DNA of 64,000 nucleotides from Epithemia pelagica (lineage: Eukaryota; Protista; Bacillariophyta), in NCBI GenBank assembly GCA_946965045.2, contig OX337234.1, positions 1,798,001 through 1,862,000 on the forward strand, written 5' to 3'. This document shows positions 32,404-64,000 of this stretch, piece by piece (the first letter of the stretch is position 1; every line of letters begins with the position of its first letter). The notes under the pieces are model-generated. The model was not told where the DNA came from. It did not search any database and saw only the letters and a program-made list of their open reading frames with translations. Both the position numbers and the translations under genes were made by a program.

Positions 32404-32493
32404 AGTAGTATTAATAATTCCCAGTGTCGAGTCCTTTCAAGAAGGGACCACCCGGCGCGGAGGGTAGAATGACGAGGAGGGCAATGGTCGAGG
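32404..32493 (+). mobile_element. Fragment 1 of a second copy of the 59031-59419 mini-element (opposite orientation)
   Basis: 85/90 nt identical to the reverse complement of 59330-59419, starting with the same terminal AGTAG. Confidence 0.9.
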
Positions 32494-33319
32494 TGGAGTT
32501 AGTTCTCTACACTAATGAGATCCAATGCCAGCTCCTTCTCAAGCATTTTCTTCTTCTTGAGTAGGGTCTCATGCTCTTGTTTTTTCTTCTTCTTGGGTAG
32601 GGTCTCATGCTCTTGTCTTGAGACTTTGATGTCATGTCCATTCAAAAATGCGGAGCATCGACCAGAAGCTTTCTCCAAAAGGCTTGCGACATAGACCACA
32701 AGCCACCCCAAAGGGGGTCACAAGTATTTCATCTTAACAAGTTTCTAAAATACAAGCCCAGCTGATGGTTAGTTTGCCTTGATAGAAATGACACAAGATT
32801 TGGTTCTACATCCGCGACCTCCCGGAACAACAGAAATGTGCTGACAATGGTACCATCAACACTGTGATAGTTGTATTGCTCTCGTGTGGTTTCGAATATT
32901 TCTGACTCGGGGTGAAGAATTCCCCGTTGGGAGGTGAGAACACATCTCGCTCGACATCTGACTGATTAAGCAGCTCCAGCAACATCTCTGGGACGTGCAC
33001 CACCATCGAGTACACGTCGGCAAAAGGGGGGACAGTGGTAGCTGCTTGGCCGAGTAGGACAGTGGTAGCTGCTTGGCCGAGAAGGATGAGTTCTCGGCAG
33101 TAGTCTGAATGAAATACATCGATGCATCGTCGTTGTCTTCTCCCACATGCAAGTGCATATTGATGATGTCACCGGGAACTATACTTGGAGTACATACCTA
33201 GGTCATAAAAAATAGATTTTGTCATGCAATAAGGTGTGATAAATCTCCTCTGATTTGATACAATAGAACAAGGTATTCTTATGCATGCAAGTGCTTATTG
33301 ATGATGTCACTGAGAACTA

Positions 33320-34890: not shown

Positions 34891-34991
34891 GGTTTAATAT
34901 GAAAACTCGAAGCACTGTTCGAAAAATTCCTTTCAGATTTCAGATACTTAACAGAAATTGTTCTCTACATGAATTGCCGCGTGCCCTCTAT

Positions 34992-35072
34992 GCCCGACAA
35001 GACATATGCCCGTCGAGTCATTCTCCCGACAAGCCGGGCGCCCGACGAGGAAGGAATGAGAAAACACAGGGG
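34992..35072 (+). mobile_element. Fragment 2 of the second copy of the mini-element
   Basis: GCCCGACAAGACATATGCCCGTCGAGTCATTCTCCCGACAAGCCGGGCG matches the reverse complement of about 59240-59320. Confidence 0.85.
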
Positions 35073-35173
35073 AACAGACATTCAATCCCCTTGCTCACCA
35101 ACGCCAAGCTTTGGACGCCCGTACAGTATTGATTGCAACCTTACCACTCACAGACATTCAATCCCCTTGCTCA

Positions 35174-55090: not shown

Positions 55091-56089
55091 ATGCCACCAG
55101 TCCCCAACCACCCATGGCAAGGTGTTGCCTTTCCTGTCACCCCCCCTCACATGCTCTTTCATGGCTTGGAGATGCTGGGCCGGGTTGCTGGAGCTCCGGA
55201 CAACGCGTACCGTCGTTTCATTTCGTTCTACGGTACGGATCCACTCGTAGTTGCTATCCTATGGCTAGAGCTACAGAATTGGATCACACAGCTGAATGGC
55301 TGTGTCCTTAATCATCTATTTTGGTCTCTTTATTTTCTAAAGAACTATGGGACAGAGGCCCAACATGCTGCTGTGTTCCATGTCGATGAGAAAACACTTC
55401 GAAAATGGGTGTGGTTCATTCTCAAAGGAATGACCACACTCCGCGTACAATTTGTAAGTTCTGTGGTCAGTGACATTCTAACTCCCCCACGAAATCCCCC
55501 ACTCACCAATTTTTTCTCTACCTGTTTCTGTACACAGATAAGATTGGGTAACCGCTTCATGCAAGACACCCACCAGCGCTCAGCGCTGGTCGTAGATGGA
55601 ACCGACTATAGAATCTTCGAGCCTAGGGCACTAGGTTTTAACCCTGGTTGGTTTTCGCACAAATTTCGTGGTCCGGGTGTCCGTTGGGAGGTAGCCACGT
55701 GTATTAACACGGGTTGGATAGTTTGGATCCACGGCCCTTTCCCTTGCGGGACCTACTCGGATCTTCGTATTTATCGCATGGCCTTGAAGACCCACTTGCT
55801 TCCTGGGGAGCGTGTGGTAGCGGATGGAACGTACAAAGACCCTACCGTCATTCTCAAACAACAAGCTCGGAATCCCGAACACGCACGTGAGATGGCCCTT
55901 GCTCGCTCTCGCCATGAGATCGTCAACGGACGATTCAAGGACTTCGGTGCGCTCTCTCAAGTTTTTCGTCATGACCGAAACAAGCACCGCTTTGTATTTA
56001 CTCCTATTGCTGTCATCACACAGCTAGAAATCATGACTGGGGGTGCACCTTTCGACATCACCGCTCAGCACAACCATGCTCTCGCCTAA
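55091..56089 (+). CDS. PIF/Harbinger (DDE_Tnp_4-like) transposase; 84-bp intron 55454-55537
   Basis: VVDGTD, FSHK, GPFPCG..SD, VVADGTY and RSRHEIVNGRFK. In-frame GTAAGT...CACAG intron. Confidence 0.9.
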   Translation: MPPVPNHPWQGVAFPVTPPHMLFHGLEMLGRVAGAPDNAYRRFISFYGTDPLVVAILWLELQNWITQLNGCVLNHLFWSLYFLKNYGTEAQHAAVFHVDEKTLRKWVWFILKGMTTLRVQFVSSVVSDILTPPRNPPLTNFFSTCFCTQIRLGNRFMQDTHQRSALVVDGTDYRIFEPRALGFNPGWFSHKFRGPGVRWEVATCINTGWIVWIHGPFPCGTYSDLRIYRMALKTHLLPGERVVADGTYKDPTVILKQQARNPEHAREMALARSRHEIVNGRFKDFGALSQVFRHDRNKHRFVFTPIAVITQLEIMTGGAPFDITAQHNHALA

Positions 56090-57537: not shown

Positions 57538-59030
57538 TTCTTCCCCCCCAATGTCCCCAAGGACCGGGACTGATCTTTCCAGTCCCGACCACCCGAATTA
57601 AACAGTCCCCGCAAGTATCAAAACTGGAAGATAACATTTTTTGGGACTTGCTCAACAATCAACGACGGGGCGACTACAAGTCGGCAGCATTCGTAGATGC
57701 GATGGTCGGTGGTCCACTCATGCCGAAAGCGGAAGAATATGTGAACTGAGAGATGAGGGCATTGCGACGTTCACGGGGCAAGATCTTCGTAAATAGGTCG
57801 GCCAAGTTTGTTTCGGTATCTTCTTTGCCAACTCGCAAGATCGAGGCGGCCGCAGCCTCTCGGACGGAATGGTAGTTGATGGCATTATGGCGTTTGGAAA
57901 GAATCGATGAAGGGAGGCTGGTATTTTTTACCACCCCGCGATTATCACACAGGACATCTGCGGGTGCTACAACGGGCACGCCGAACATTCGAAGCTTGTA
58001 TCGAAGCTCGATGATCATCTCCTTGGCGATCCGCAAAGCAACAAATTCGCTTCCGAAACTGGAGGTCTCGACGGTGTTCTGTCGTTTCGAATATTAGAGT
58101 ATCGGTGCGTTCTGTAAAAAAATGTGTATGCCACTGTGAGATCGACGGGTAACAACATTCCCAGCGTGGTCAGCATCAACGAAGCACGTGATCTTTATCG
58201 GGCTTCCTAGCGGCTCGGGCATGTTGGGTGGCAGCTCTTCAACGACGTCCCCGTAAAATTCTTTCCATTCCGCAATGGGTACTTGCGCGAAGCAACTATC
58301 ATCGAGTGTCACGTCTTTAGCGTCAAACACAATCTTCAACTTCAGATGTTTCTTAACAAAGGCAAAGATATGATACACGGCCTCAAGGTGGCCGGCTCTC
58401 GGGTTCGCAAGATATTGGGACATCAGCGACACTTCAAGATAGATGTCAAGCCTCCCCAATTCGACCGCCCAACGCAGGATTCCAATCAACTGTTGGTACC
58501 TGTTTGTCAACTCTGGCCCCAACTCTGGGGTTGTGTCCAATTCGGGCTTATAAGAAGCAACAATAGGCACTCTGGCCGTGGTTTTCAAGTGTTGCCCGTC
58601 CCCGTCTTTTTCTAACATGTCCTCCACAATCTTTATGGCGTTTCCCAGGTACTTTTTACTGGTCATGCCCCAAGCCCATTGCCCATCAGGAAGGCTGTGC
58701 TTGTATATTTGGGCGCCGAGATAGACACTTGGTTCCCCAATGCTTCCGGATTGAATCTTATAGTATCCGTCAATCTCGTCCAACACTGGCTTAGGATCGG
58801 CACTAACCAGTAGTATGTCGTGGACATAGACTAGGATTAGCTCATAATATTCCTCGCCGTTTGCCCGTCTAGCCCGCCTTCTCAACACGCAAGGGTCGGC
58901 CCTTGTGTCAGCGAAACCCATCTCGTAGAGGGTATTCATCAACGTAATCCTCCAACTAGCCCCGGATGATTTCAATCCGTATAACGCTCGTGTCATCACA
59001 CATACCTTTCCTTTATCCTCGTTCCCTACT

Positions 59031-59419
59031 AACTCCATACCAGACTGTGTAGGTAGTTCGTCTCACATTTTTATACTACAGTAGGAATTTTTTGTACGAT
59101 CGGGAAGTAGTTTCGTGCGAGTCGCGCGGTTTCCCTCTCGTGTGTGACACTTGTGTGACACTTGTGTGACACTTTGTGACATGGCTTCCAGGAATTTCTC
59201 ACTACCTACACAGCCTGATAGGGAGTAAGTTTACTACTTCCCTGTGTCTGGCCGTCCTCTCGCGTCGGGCGCGCCCGGCTTGTCGGGAGAATGACTCGAC
59301 GGGCAATTGTCTTGTCGGGCGTGCGCCCTCCTCGACCATTGCCCTCCTCGTCATTCTACCCTCCGCGCCGGGCGGTCCCTCCTTGAAAGGACTCAACACC
59401 GGGAAGTATTAATACTACT
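59031..59419. mobile_element. Non-coding 384-bp insertion in Copia-2 RT, flanked by CTACT; unclassified
   Basis: CTACT occurs at 59026-59030 and 59415-59419. Removing the insert and one CTACT restores GPEV-GNEDKG. It contains two adjoining inverted-repeat units and an 11-bp tandem TGTGTGACACT x3. Confidence 0.92.
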
Positions 59420-62400
59420 TCCGGCCCACCTAGGAACCAGACTTTTTCACGACACGGGGCGTTCAGGTACGCGTTCCCGATGTCACAGGCCATCACCTCA
59501 AGGCCGTTCAGTGCCGCAATCAGGAACGCCATCCTGATTGAATCCCGACTTACCACGCTCGAGTATGTCAAGCTCGTTGGCGCATCAGTCAGATGCCCGC
59601 CCGCTACCAGACGTGCTTTTCTCGTTAGATCAAGCTTGATATCGAAAACCATATGGCACGTGATTTCCGTGTACCCAATGAGTTGTCGCCCGGCGCGTAC
59701 TCGATCTATATCTAGGTCTTCTCTCGCTTCCCAGGCTATTTTGACTGCTTTTAGCTCCTTGTCGATAGCTTTCCTCCAGTAATCCGTCCCCGTCTGTTCG
59801 TCGATAGCCAAGGCTTCTTCGACCGAATGCGGTAACCGGATTCCGAACTTGCTCGTTGTCTTCCAATATTTCTTTTTAACCTTATTTATCATCCGCTGCA
59901 TGTGGTTTCGTGTCTCTGGCACCCACCAATGGAATGCCGGTTCTGTTTCTATCTGTTGGGCCACAGCGTATTCGGCTAAATCGATAGGATATCCATCCTT
60001 GACATCTTTCAATGGCATCCACACTTGGGATCCGTCTACCAGTTCGACTGCGATCTCCCAACCTTTGGTTGTTCGCTTCGGATGACGATTCCCATTCAAT
60101 CCAACATGGAACCCATCCTCCTTTGGGACAGCGTCCCCGTTTTTTTGATGCCCTACAATTTCTCTCACCAGCAAGAAATTGTTCCCGTCGTCATCCACCT
60201 TGGCATACAGGTTTGCCGCGACGATATTCGCCGTATACTCGTGGATAAGACCCCCAGGAAACTTCACTTCGTAAGTGCGGGAATCAAATAAGGGGTTTTT
60301 GTGTTTCTTGCCAATAGGCTTCCCGTCTAACCCTTTCTGTCGTTTTGTGACCGTACCCACCATGTTCTCGCCTCCGATGTCCATTCGGATCTGGGCACCG
60401 ACATACTTGTCGTATTGGCTGCCCATATCGTCGGCGTCAGGCGTCTGTTCTTCTATCATCTGTCCGTAGTCCTCGTCGGACGGGACCAATCCGCGTCGTC
60501 GCCACTCTTCCTCGTCGTCTTCGACGTCTTCCAGGTACCCGGGTCGGCCATCGCCGTCGTCTTTGAAGTTTGTGTCATCCAACCGTTCTGCGACAATCAA
60601 CCGGAAATTCCGAATTTTTTCGCGAACATCTTCTTTCTCCTGGTCCTCTTTTGTCACATGCTGCACCGTCGTCCGTGTTATCACTTTCCCAGACTTGGTT
60701 AGCACCCAGTAACACAAGTCACTACCGATGCGATGAGCAATGCCGAGCCAATACCCCAGATGATATTGCTCGTCGGCGGTGTCGGTCTTTTGGTTGGTAT
60801 GATACCAAACCAAGTCAAAGAATTGGAAATCAATCCACTCCGATATATCAGGCGTCTCCCCAGTGAGTCGTTCAATTCCGGTACGACCGTCCTGTCCCCG
60901 GGCGACTCGACTGAGGAGGCCCGCCTCATATACTAACCCGTAGTCCCACAATTGATTCGGAACACGTCTTTTATTCATCCTTTGCCTCCAGCGCTGCTTG
61001 AGAAGGCCAATCTCTCGTTCGGCTTTGTGGTTTTGCTTGCCAGTGCCTTTTTCGGAATAATGAAACTGGATTCGATGAAAACAACCAAGTTTCGCAAACA
61101 TGGTGGCTGCACCTGTCTGCTCAGTAGCAAGATCGGCAGTCAAGTGTTCGGGCACGCCCACATTGTCAATAAATTCTGCCAGAGCTTGACCGGCATGGCT
61201 TTTCGAGGCCATCGGGTATACTGCTGTAAACTGCCCGTCTGTAAAGACCTGGGCGCACTTCTTTCCTGCTAATGAAAGCGTTTTACTAAACAACGTATTT
61301 GTGTAGATGCGTGTGTTGAGCCGATTACGATGCAACGCAAGGTTATCCACGCGGTAACACCGCGTAATAGGTGCAACCGCAGTACGGACTCCCTGTTGGG
61401 TGGTCACTCGGAGGGTGTTACGTGCCGTTCCGAGTCCAATATTCCATTTGCGACTGAGTGACTCCGGTAAAACTCCAGAGTGTCGCGAACTCGCGACCTG
61501 ATGCAGGGAAGTAAGGGCGTGACCAAGACCATTTGGATCCAACGCGATTGAAACTTTCCCGATTTCGCTACTGGCAATCGCATGTGCCTCCTCATACGGA
61601 CTCGCGCCAAGTAGCCACGATAAATCAACTTTCTTCGGGTCCCAGCTTTCCTGCCTCGTGATGACCACGTCCGGCAAATTTTCGATTTCATGGTGACTCG
61701 GGGCACGGGACTCAAAGTACACCGTCGTCCCCTCCATCTTGAATGGCACGTGGATCCCATCGACCCAAATGCTGAATCCATCTGCTCCCTGGCGCGTTGG
61801 GTCGTCCCTGACCTCATGCCCCGCATGGCGGATCTGGTTCTGATTTAATAAAGTTTTAGACAAATTCTTCCCGAACCACAACATTTGGTGGCCGATTATG
61901 ATCGTTTCTAGACCACTTTTCTCGTCCCGAATCAAGGTGGCACATGTTGCCACTAGGACATGGCTCTTTCCAACTTGATTGCCTGCGAAATCGTTCACAG
62001 CGCATTCCATCCCAGTCGTCTCGACCAGGGTCCAATTCTCACCGGCGCAACAAGTGTCCGCCATCGTGTCCATCTCGTTTCGTCCGAGCACTGGCACACT
62101 CGAATTCTTGGTATCCAACAACCAACCCTTTTCGACTTGTCCTACGAGTCGTCGTGGCCCACAAGTCACCATGGAGACATCCCTTCCGTCGCCGGCCGTC
62201 GGATATGCCCCTGCCCCGAACCTGCGGCCATTGGTACCACCACGATCCCCCGTCTGATCGTCGGTCTGTGTATCCGGTGCTCGCTGCCCTTCAGCACAAT
62301 TCTCGTCGGTCTGGACGTTTCCAACGTCACGTCCCCCTCTGTTGCCGCCACCCTGGGCGTTCCCCCGACCATTTCCTTGGCCGTTTCCCCTGTTTCTACT

Positions 62401-64000
62401 GCGGCTGCCTCCACGGCCATTGCCACCATTTCCTTGGTTCCTCAGCCGTGCCCTTTCCTGGAACACGTACTGCTGCCCGGTCGTCCCAAGGGTAGCCATT
62501 TCTTGGTCGGTAAAGCGACGGTTGACGTCTGTGACGTCGACTCCATACAGGGTGTAAACGCCATTTGCGTGGCTCAGCCCTTGGATTTGCTGAGGGCGGG
62601 AGTTGGTCTCGGAAACGAAACGATGTCAGTTTCCACCACGAGTCCCCTCAACTACCACCTGAGGAAACAGCTCGGATACCTCCGTAGAGATGTAAGAGAT
62701 GGCGCCATGCAAGTCAGAGCGGAAGTTGCTCCTGACGTGGCCCTTGATAACGGCAAACTCGGCCGTGTTAATCTTGATGTTTTCGAGCAACGCTCGCACT
62801 TGGTTTGAGGGGGTGCGAGGATTTGGGGTGTTCTCCAGCGTTCGAAAGGCTCGGAGGATCTTAGCAGCATAAGCGTCAAAACTAAAGACGTGCTCATTAT
62901 TATAGAAGAGGTTTTCCAACACTGCTTCCGCTTTAATGATTCTCTTCTCCTTTTGCCCGCCACCATCATAGTGGGCAACAAGGGCCATCCAAGCGCCTCT
63001 TCCATCCTGTTGGGACTGGAAGGGCTGGATCCAGGTCGCGGGTTGATCCTTAACCCGATCGCTTAGCAAGCGAAAGACTTGACGGTTGTCTTCACGGAAG
63101 AAAGGTCCAGTTAGAGGATAACTATATTTTTCACGTTCGCTAGGGGTAGCAAACACGTGACCAGGCTCTAGCTCGAGCCTAATAACATAGTCCAGCGGAG
63201 CTTTCTGCTTTCCCGACACATGGGATAGATATGTGGGGAATTCTTGGGACCATTCCTCCCACGCATCCTCCTTGAGGATGTCTGGTTTTATATCAGGTGA
63301 CGTGTCGGTCGTGTCCTCAATTTCCATGCCGTCGAGGGCATCGGAAAGAGTTCCTGCATCAAACTCGCCCGCATAGATAATACGTCCTTGTCGTCGGGCT
63401 TTCCTGGCCCAGAAACAGAGGCCTTGAATGTTCTTCACGACTCCCGTCGGAATGCTAATAGGCGGGTTTCGCTTTTCCAGGCGAGATGCCAGCTGAGATA
63501 CGTCATCCGCGGACATTCTCCCGAAAGCTTGAAGGGAATTAAGCCGTTCTGTGACTTCAAGCACTTGAATTTCGGTCGGGTCGGCCCCGCACACCGTCAA
63601 GGCGAGTCCAACAGCAGATAAGGGTAAGGGTGGTCCAGCGCCATGTCCGGCGCCTCTTCCAGCACCTCCTCCTCCTCCTCCTGGCGCTCCTCCACCGCCA
63701 CCGCCGGCTCCACCGCCGGCTCCACCACCGGCTCCACCGCCAGCTCCATCACCGGCGCCACCACCGGCACCACCTCCGGTACCTCCCGTGCCTCCTCCGG
63801 CACCTTCACCTCCGCCGGTGCTTCCTCCGGTGCCGCCTGCACCGTGTCCTCCGCCGCTCCCGGCGTTGCCAGTTGCACCTCCTGCGGTGCGCCTGCTAGT
63901 CCCTCCGTGGGTACTCGTTCCAGTACCAGCGCCTCCTGCGCTCATTCCTCCGCCTCCAGCGGCGTTCCCGCGATCCGTGACATCAGGATCGCCCGTGTTG

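Follow-up and report, generated by a model that had tools for sequence, protein, structure and literature searches.

Background

Of all eukaryotic DNA transposons, Cryptons (Goodwin et al. 2003; Kojima and Jurka 2011, PMC3212892) form the class about which least is understood. Their short terminal direct repeats (published length 4-6), their presence in a diatom, and their non-autonomous derivatives have already been published (PMC3212892). The papers on these elements (PMC3212892; PMC12130899) are built on sequence-based inferences without a transposition assay and describe Cryptons as devoid of structural features, which makes them hard to annotate, and neither a palindrome nor a hairpin in Cryptons is mentioned in PMC3212892, PMC13465315 (2026, on CryptonA), or PMC12130899 (an introner survey). 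Here, a 389-bp insertion, henceforth called mini-1, was analysed in a stretch of 64,000 nucleotides from the diatom Epithemia pelagica (GenBank assembly GCA_946965045.2, contig OX337234.1, positions 1,798,001 to 1,862,000 of the forward strand). This whole stretch is called the window, and positions are given in its coordinates. Mini-1 is very probably a non-autonomous Crypton moved in trans by the recombinase of long partner elements, via a circle that is formed and resolved at a CTA core. Its composition is best explained by a deletion derivative in which two cis-acting end modules were kept and the recombinase gene was replaced by about 85 nt of filler.

Copies of mini-1 and their target site

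All genome-wide counts refer to the window's own genome (60.5 Mb). The search with mini-1 returned 57 scored matches among 172 candidates, more than 40 of them full length at 96-100% identity, and 28-mers allowing up to three mismatches located 95 left ends and 100 right ends (reversed-pattern controls: 0). Mini-1 is a young repeat with about 100 copies in the genome; the median identity to the consensus was 98.5% among 35 full copies aligned with their flanks. Conserved sequence in the aligned copies spans CTAACTCC to TTAATACTA, the boundaries CTAAC...CTA are invariable in 50+ copies, and the 5' ends are precise in nearly all of them. No inverted repeat was found between the left terminus (ACTCCATACC...) and the right terminus (...GAAGTATTAATA), and the flanks show no duplication beyond a fixed CTA, which is the sole sequence constant at both ends across copies. 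The left flank is mostly nTA (T at -2 in 30 of 44 copies, A at -1 in 32 of 44), and the right flank carries C at +1 in 28 of 37 copies, followed by C or T (p < 1e-7 for each of the three biases). At the level of the family, the direct repeat is CTA within a TA-CTA-CY target (RG-TAG-TA on the other strand), and in about two thirds of the copies it is TACTA (5 nt) rather than CTA alone. A target-site duplication of 5 bp (CTACT), of 3 bp, or of TA was rejected, as the left three bases vary and the right CTA does not. A miniature inverted-repeat transposable element (MITE) or other transposon with terminal inverted repeats (TIRs) was rejected because the ends are not inverted copies of each other and nothing beyond CTA is duplicated in the flanks, and a short interspersed element (SINE) because of the precise 5' ends, the lack of a tRNA, and the lack of any Rfam family at E-values up to 1.

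In the window, mini-1 interrupts a copia-type reverse transcriptase (RT) gene, the reading frame of which runs from one open reading frame (ORF; 59356-62499, minus strand) across the insertion into the downstream ORF (58094-59038, minus strand). The uninterrupted paralogue L032, which is 98-99% identical, reads GTTCC-CTACT-TCCGG where the window holds 389 additional bp, and more distant paralogues of the site also read GTTCC-CTACT-TCCGG without interruption. A sequence-only reading of the window had placed the boundaries from the interrupted RT frame, and both the paralogue and the RVT_2 match in the downstream ORF agree with that placement. Its further description of the ends applies to this copy more than to the family. 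CTACT is indeed found at 59026-59030 and 59415-59419, but only CTA is constant elsewhere. The right end and its flank do form a near-perfect palindrome (GGAAGTA-TTAATAC-TACTTCC) in the window, but this flank is not conserved in other copies. The proposed AGTAG specificity was roughly right in view of the family target RG-TAG-TA, with the target palindrome being limited to the window copy. An introner was rejected by eye, since no choice of GT...AG on the RT-coding strand removes the insert in frame.

Some variation among the copies was recorded. Many have a left-to-right end spacing of 350 rather than 361 nt, i.e., one TGTGTGACACT unit fewer. Two (L014:1501-1886 and L030:1501-1886) end early at TATTAA, followed by an identical stretch of 12 nt (CGCCAATCGTAA), which reflects either a duplicated locus or a variant right end. 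Flanks of L015, L016, and L021/L054 show insertions within AGTAGG/CTAGTAGGAGTAGG-rich DNA that contains the TAG/CTA core many times over; this DNA may attract insertions as a preferred repeat, or older family members may have left it behind.

Empty sites, tandem arrays, and nested copies

Three paralogous empty sites were found, one being that of the window copy. For L063, a copy of the second miniature family described below (mini-2), the empty site in L043 reads ATTTC-CTA-CTGGAG, and for the mini-1 copy L024 the empty site in L064 (84% identical) reads GATTTT-CCA-ATTTA in the same register. Both fit a target with one CTA that is found on each side once the site is occupied. Homotypic head-to-tail dimers were found in L003, L005, L021, L023, and L027, and in L011 the second copy is partial; their period is 386 bp, and at the junction TTAATA-CTA-ACTCC the two members have exactly one CTA in common. 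The same single CTA is common to the members of mixed tandems, in which long A, one of the long families introduced below, is followed by mini-1 (L052), or mini-2 is followed by mini-1 (L055). In L047, a copy has inserted into another of its kind at CA-CTA-CC, the start of the internal complementary region (ICR), with CTA on both sides. Such one-CTA tandems and nested copies are expected from a reciprocal exchange between a circle junction and the CTA of a resident copy. A linear 389-bp insertion without overlap is contradicted by the 386-bp dimer period and the two empty sites. A ribozyme- or viroid-like (retrozyme) origin of the tandem, rod-folding unit was rejected after no Rfam family matched at E-values up to 1 in three dimer loci.

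Site-specific insertion without target duplication, subterminal hairpins, and tandem arrays would also be explained by a rolling-circle or single-strand element (HUH-type, Helitron- or IS200/IS605-like), and mini-1 does lack TIRs, lies beside a fixed short motif, is strongly folded on its right side, and occurs in head-to-tail arrays. However, one CTA in empty sites and one on both sides of occupied sites is what marks a reciprocal exchange at a core common to both partners, the termini CTAAC...CTA within TA-CTA-CY differ from the TC...CTRR of a Helitron, and the long partners' sole recognisable product is a predicted tyrosine recombinase, with no Rep or helicase among the partner ORFs scanned (see below). 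Taken together, this renders an HUH-type element extremely unlikely.

Further insertions into family members were noted. L047 also holds a 1.4-kb element (1344-2747) bounded by perfect terminal inverted repeats (at least 43 bp, starting CGAGCTCCACCAATCG) and a duplicated TA. It sits in the ICR of a mini-1 copy that is itself inside an older copy. A mini-2 copy (G000:C5:3482374-3482571 and 3484607-3484812) is split near position 195 by a 2-kb insertion, and this split point is the start of its ICR, the same hot spot as that of the self-insertion in L047. Pairs of perfect ends 2-11 kb apart (L043-L049) were rejected as autonomous copies, as they are mini-elements split by unrelated nested insertions.

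Long partners and a second miniature family

Long elements with the same ends, which the sequence-only reading had suggested looking for, were reached via a slightly diverged variant of the left end (L050-L054). Long A (L050-L053) comprises four elements of 4.15-4.6 kb that are 98-99% identical to one another and have positions 4-88 (86%) and 175-393 (82%) in common with mini-1 and nothing between; the modules common to mini-1 and the long partners are about 88 nt on the left and about 220 nt on the right. The second long family, long B, is represented by L054. Mini-2 (L055-L066) has at least 25 copies at 88-97% identity, is 75% identical to mini-1, and is 87-88% identical to L054 over its right 220 nt. 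Mini-1 with long A and mini-2 with long B hence constitute two miniature/long pairs on one ground plan. The left end of the long partners is separated from its complement by 3.9 kb in which the recombinase gene lies, and, relative to the orientation of the mini-element, the long ORFs of the partner are all on the opposite strand. A small dyad (AGTA-N4-TACT) is present in mini-1, mini-2, and long B, but not in long A.

Since an inverted repeat bounds each half of mini-1, it could alternatively be regarded as two independent TIR elements (MITEs) lying side by side, one at 59028-59230 (30-bp inverted ends) and one at 59221-59422 (27-bp inverted ends), and some genomic matches do span one half only. 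All half-length matches inspected were, however, whole copies that had been split by unrelated nested insertions or internally deleted, and among them the halves never occurred as independent elements. They moreover overlap by 10 nt, the supposed TIRs of the left half bracket the recombinase gene in the long partners, and the 50+ copies are all bounded by the same termini, which makes a juxtaposition of two MITEs barely conceivable.

The partner enzyme

A Pfam scan of 14 of the 19 partner ORFs of at least 80 aa (L050:450-4700) detected no RT, RNase H, methyltransferase, DDE transposase, or Rep, and Pfam, PDB phmmer, and shallow profile searches with the partner protein were all blank. Relatives of this protein numbered 8 in a word-index search and 179 in an exhaustive HMMER profile search. 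A profile built from 82 relatives had a single PDB match, the tyrosine recombinase XerA (E-value 0.12), for which the alignment falls on box II with R-x-x-R, H, and Y matched. Conserved catalytic candidates are a box I G-x-R-G-x-E, followed by T-x-R-x-x-R-R-T, R-H, and Y. The database protein P0002 is a relative with 63% identity to the L051 ORF. Its first 80 residues match the C-terminal 80 of the partner's upstream ORF at 56% identity, and the latter segment ends in G-x-R-G-M-E-V-S, the position of box I. Box I in the upstream ORF implies a catalytic domain split by an intron or a short gap. The recombinase pieces were searched apart, and the natural database protein P0002, which includes the upstream box I segment, was used for structure modelling. 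Its AlphaFold (AF2) model had a mean predicted local distance difference test score (pLDDT) of 85.8 and a predicted template modelling score (pTM) of 0.80. The top Foldseek matches of the model were tyrosine recombinases, nearly all listed rows having a probability of 0.96-1.0, and VIA-align yielded Z 17 to the catalytic domain of Cre (190-204 residues, root-mean-square deviation 3.0-3.5), Z 13-14 to XerA and XerH, and Z 11.5 to QRICH1, the DUF3504 domain of which is described as derived from a Crypton recombinase (PMC3212892).

Judging from this model, the sole recognisable gene product of the long partners has a tyrosine-recombinase fold. Such a fold, together with the lack of an RT in the scanned ORFs, makes the partner Crypton-type and not DIRS-type. 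In a derivative of a DIRS-like retroelement, the internal region would serve as the template of the circle junction when RNA is reverse-transcribed, in line with the proposal for DIRS1. This reading fits the geometry, as both termini find their complement in one internal segment (right end first, then left end), and DIRS elements likewise encode a tyrosine recombinase. It is nevertheless very unlikely. Neither RT, RNase H, nor methyltransferase was found in the ORFs scanned, and beside the recombinase ORFs a 4.15-kb partner has little room for them. The termini are not inverted repeats of each other, and complementarity runs through the whole right 220 nt, far more than a junction template needs. 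The long same-end elements and the predicted recombinase fold support the earlier interpretation of mini-1 as a non-autonomous miniature of a tyrosine-recombinase element that is not a MITE, solo long terminal repeat (LTR), or SINE. Where that interpretation had left the choice between DIRS-like and Crypton-like, only the latter holds, and the DIRS-style templating role assigned to the internal region loses its basis.

A palindrome completed by joining the ends

Complementarity of the internal segment 59201-59247 to the joined right and left ends, as the sequence-only reading had described it, was recovered in a repeat search. Positions 59028-59057 and 59201-59230 form an inverted repeat of 30 nt (87%, 26/30), and 59221-59247 and 59396-59422 form one of 27 nt (78%). 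With two nested inverted pairs (59254-59279/59367-59392 and 59285-59321/59324-59360), the right half of mini-1 amounts to one long, imperfect hairpin that has its centre near 59322. An imperfect palindrome of about 250 nt has the ICR as one arm and the right end plus the left end as the other, and it is complete only once the ends of the element are joined. A natural tandem junction (L021:1283-1544) folded as single-stranded DNA gave one hairpin of -62.5 kcal/mol, which takes in the internal region, the G+C-rich core, the right end, and the left end of the next copy. Two hundred shuffles gave -33.8 +/- 3.7 kcal/mol (z -7.8), none of them as good as the natural junction. The same rod was obtained when the 386-nt unit was folded as a circle, in which the other 142 nt are weakly structured (z about -2).

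For a comparison across families, the consensus sequences of mini-1 and mini-2 were aligned with L050 and L054, permuted across the junction, and folded together. The 77 consensus pairs include 54 that are invariant, 12 with compensatory changes, and 4 changed on one side. Of all cells, 95.5% were paired, compared with 37-46% when the partners were slid by one to three columns, and among 2000 column shuffles the paired count was reached by 0 and the compensatory count by 1. Compensatory changes lie near the tip of the palindrome, where one position shows four different pair types. The right end and the internal segment carry matching family-specific motifs, and a CTGTG/CTATG change in the left end is mirrored. 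In all four families, the A of the junction CTA faces another A and does not pair (alignment columns 44 and 240), and this A-A (AGTAAG facing CTAAC) is the one fixed mismatch at the crossover. Pairing between ends and internal region is kept, with covariation, and the latter may be taken as good but not conclusive evidence of selection, coming as it does from four related sequences.

Pairing in RNA would account for the covariation equally well. The palindrome of the long partners is found a short way upstream of the recombinase gene on the minus strand, a position that would suit a palindrome kept mainly as a hairpin RNA, either as a source of small RNAs or as a signal in the recombinase transcript, with the element still being a Crypton derivative. 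However, the pairing takes in the left end, which is joined to the right end only in a circle or a tandem array, so that the whole structure is out of reach for a transcript of one integrated copy. A match to an Rfam family was not found either, and a hairpin RNA as the main reason for conservation is regarded as very unlikely.

Proposed mechanism and points against it

The circle, the mobilisation in trans, and the role of the palindrome are what we infer here, as distinct from what was shown above. A recombinase supplied in trans by a long partner would recombine the direct repeats at the ends (CTA, usually within TACTA) and release a 386-bp circle, with one CTA staying in the donor site. 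The circle would then re-integrate at TA-CTA-CY, resulting in one CTA on each side. The element's own ends and the internal CA-CTA-CC would serve as sites as well, which would account for head-to-tail arrays and self-nested copies. As the palindrome is complete only with the ends joined, the favoured role for it is that of a circle-specific recombination-site architecture that would tell the joined (integration-ready) from the integrated form. It is further conceivable, although we consider it rather doubtful, that the split palindrome is a working recombination substrate, folded as a cruciform or as a single-stranded hairpin in the joined form only. In that case, the junction and its mirror copy would face each other, the crossover being marked by the fixed A-A mismatch, and the substrate of this eukaryotic recombinase would be a folded site, like CTX-phi attP for XerCD and attC for IntI. 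Integration versus excision would then be set by DNA shape and not by accessory proteins, and the 389-bp miniature would represent a minimal substrate.

Several points weigh against mini-1 as a Crypton derivative mobilised in this manner. The nearest long partner fetched, a candidate mobiliser, is just 82-86% identical to the ends of mini-1. No Pfam recombinase model recognises the partner protein, and in the weak XerA alignment the His of H-x-x-R is Arg in the partner family. Covariation rests on four related families, in which concerted evolution or intramolecular gene conversion could mimic selection. The window insertion of 389 bp is three above the 386 bp predicted by the CTA rule. Out-of-register excision from a donor preceded by CTA, or slippage, would account for this difference; CTA directly precedes 7 of 30 copies. 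Gapped-pattern searches for allelic empty sites of L004 and L006 found none, and a circle, an excision footprint, and an insertion polymorphism were all without direct observation. With these points considered, a non-autonomous Crypton is still very much the most probable identity of mini-1.

Features of the window

Coordinates of the mini-1 copy, its parts, and its surroundings are collected in Table 1.

Table 1. Features of the mini-1 insertion and related sequences in the window
Feature	Position	Strand	Remarks
mini-1	59029..59417	+	CTAACTCC...TTAATACTA; 389 bp including CTA at each end; tandem repeat unit 386 bp
Extra CTA left of the window copy	59026..59028	+	with 59029-59030 makes CTACT; one CTACT only at the empty site of the paralogue
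Left CTA direct repeat (crossover core)	59029..59031	+	constant in copies of all four families; once in empty sites L043 and L064
Right CTA direct repeat	59415..59417	+	followed by target C-Y (59418-59419 = CT); C at +1 in 28/37 copies
Left-end module common to long partners	59032..59113	+	86% identity to long A over positions 4-88
First ~26 nt of left module	59032-59057	+	outer part of palindrome arm 2; pairs with 59201-59226
Middle filler	59114..59199	+	matches neither long A nor long B
Three 11-nt tandem units TGTGTGACACT	59141-59174	+	inside the mini-1 middle filler
Internal inverted copy of joined ends (ICR)	59201..59247	+	outer part of palindrome arm 1
AGTAAG	59224-59229	+	faces junction CTAAC; second A (59227) opposite the A of CTA
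G+C-rich inner palindrome	59254..59392	+	centre near 59322/59323; two nested inverted pairs
Right-end arm	59396..59414	+	pairs with 59229-59247; holds the small dyad AGTA-N4-TACT
Downstream half of interrupted copia-type RT gene (insertion host)	58094..59038	-	Pfam RVT_2, E-value 1.6e-8, profile positions 108-209
Second, 5'-truncated right-end fragment of the mini-1 family	32406..32496	-	94.5% identity to mini-1 positions 299-389

Elsewhere in the window, two fragments 2.5 kb apart are consecutive in element coordinates. The fragment at 34990-35073 (minus strand) is mini-2-like (positions 214-297, 98.8% identity), and the one at 32406-32496 (minus strand) is mini-1-like (positions 299-389). 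They look like one copy split at the centre of the palindrome by a nested insertion, and this copy is possibly a chimera of mini-1 and mini-2. At 55091-56089 (plus strand), a 332-aa ORF resembles by eye a PIF/Harbinger-type transposase, with no Pfam match at an E-value of 1e-5.

Significance and comparison with known systems

Mini-1 offers a young and abundant element of 389 bp with exact boundaries, a defined target, natural junctions, a recombinase partner, and a conserved structure open to mutation with compensating changes. The combination could serve as a minimal substrate for a first mechanistic test of Crypton transposition. The split palindrome would also provide a structural signature for finding Crypton derivatives that carry no gene, and an ICR-like geometry in a recombinase element without RT bears on how DIRS elements acquired theirs.

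Like Cryptons in general, including CryptonS of oomycetes and the diatom Phaeodactylum (PMC3212892), the long partners have a tyrosine recombinase as the only recognised enzyme, and they agree with CryptonS in the absence of TIRs and LTRs, in a proposed circular intermediate, and in a gene that probably contains an intron. Unlike CryptonS, which have repeats of 5-6 bp and mostly TATGG termini (PMC3212892), mini-1 has a repeat of 3 nt, CTA (TACTA in about two thirds of the copies). The protein of its partner differs from theirs in that no Pfam model detects it, and the only link to Crypton recombinases is the structural match to QRICH1 (Z 11.5). The conserved, junction-spanning palindrome of about 250 nt sets the present elements apart from published Cryptons, which PMC3212892, PMC13465315, and PMC12130899 describe as devoid of terminal or structural features. 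Among non-autonomous Cryptons, CryptonI-1N1_RPro of Rhodnius and CryptonA-1N1/N2_OL of medaka (PMC3212892) arose in a comparable way, by internal deletion with a few hundred bp of both ends being kept, and there, too, the small elements outnumber their autonomous partners. Those elements were reported without terminal repeats (PMC3212892), whereas a fixed CTA, a defined target, and tandem arrays are found here, and their ends are 98% identical to the partner compared with 82-86% between mini-1 and the nearest partner found.

Mini-1 and its partners resemble DIRS1-type elements in having the complement of both termini within one internal segment, in the tyrosine recombinase, and in the circular intermediate that is presumed for them; they differ in that no RT, RNase H, or methyltransferase was found in the scanned ORFs, the termini are not inverted repeats, and one long palindrome takes the place of a short template. 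Integrases of the Tn916/Tn1549 type are likewise tyrosine recombinases that excise a circle and use loosely defined sites, and Tn1549 Int was the best Foldseek match by E-value. Its VIA Z was, however, 11.5 compared with 17 for Cre, and those elements carry variable coupling sequences, whereas the core of mini-1 is fixed. In terms of how the site might work, and in those terms only, the closest likeness is to the CTX-phi attP used by XerCD and the integron attC used by IntI, each an imperfect hairpin of two inverted site copies with a fixed mismatch at the crossover. These belong to single-stranded phage or cassette DNA in bacteria, while mini-1 is not known to pass through a single-stranded stage, and its palindrome is several times longer. 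CTX prophages form tandem arrays, as mini-1 does.

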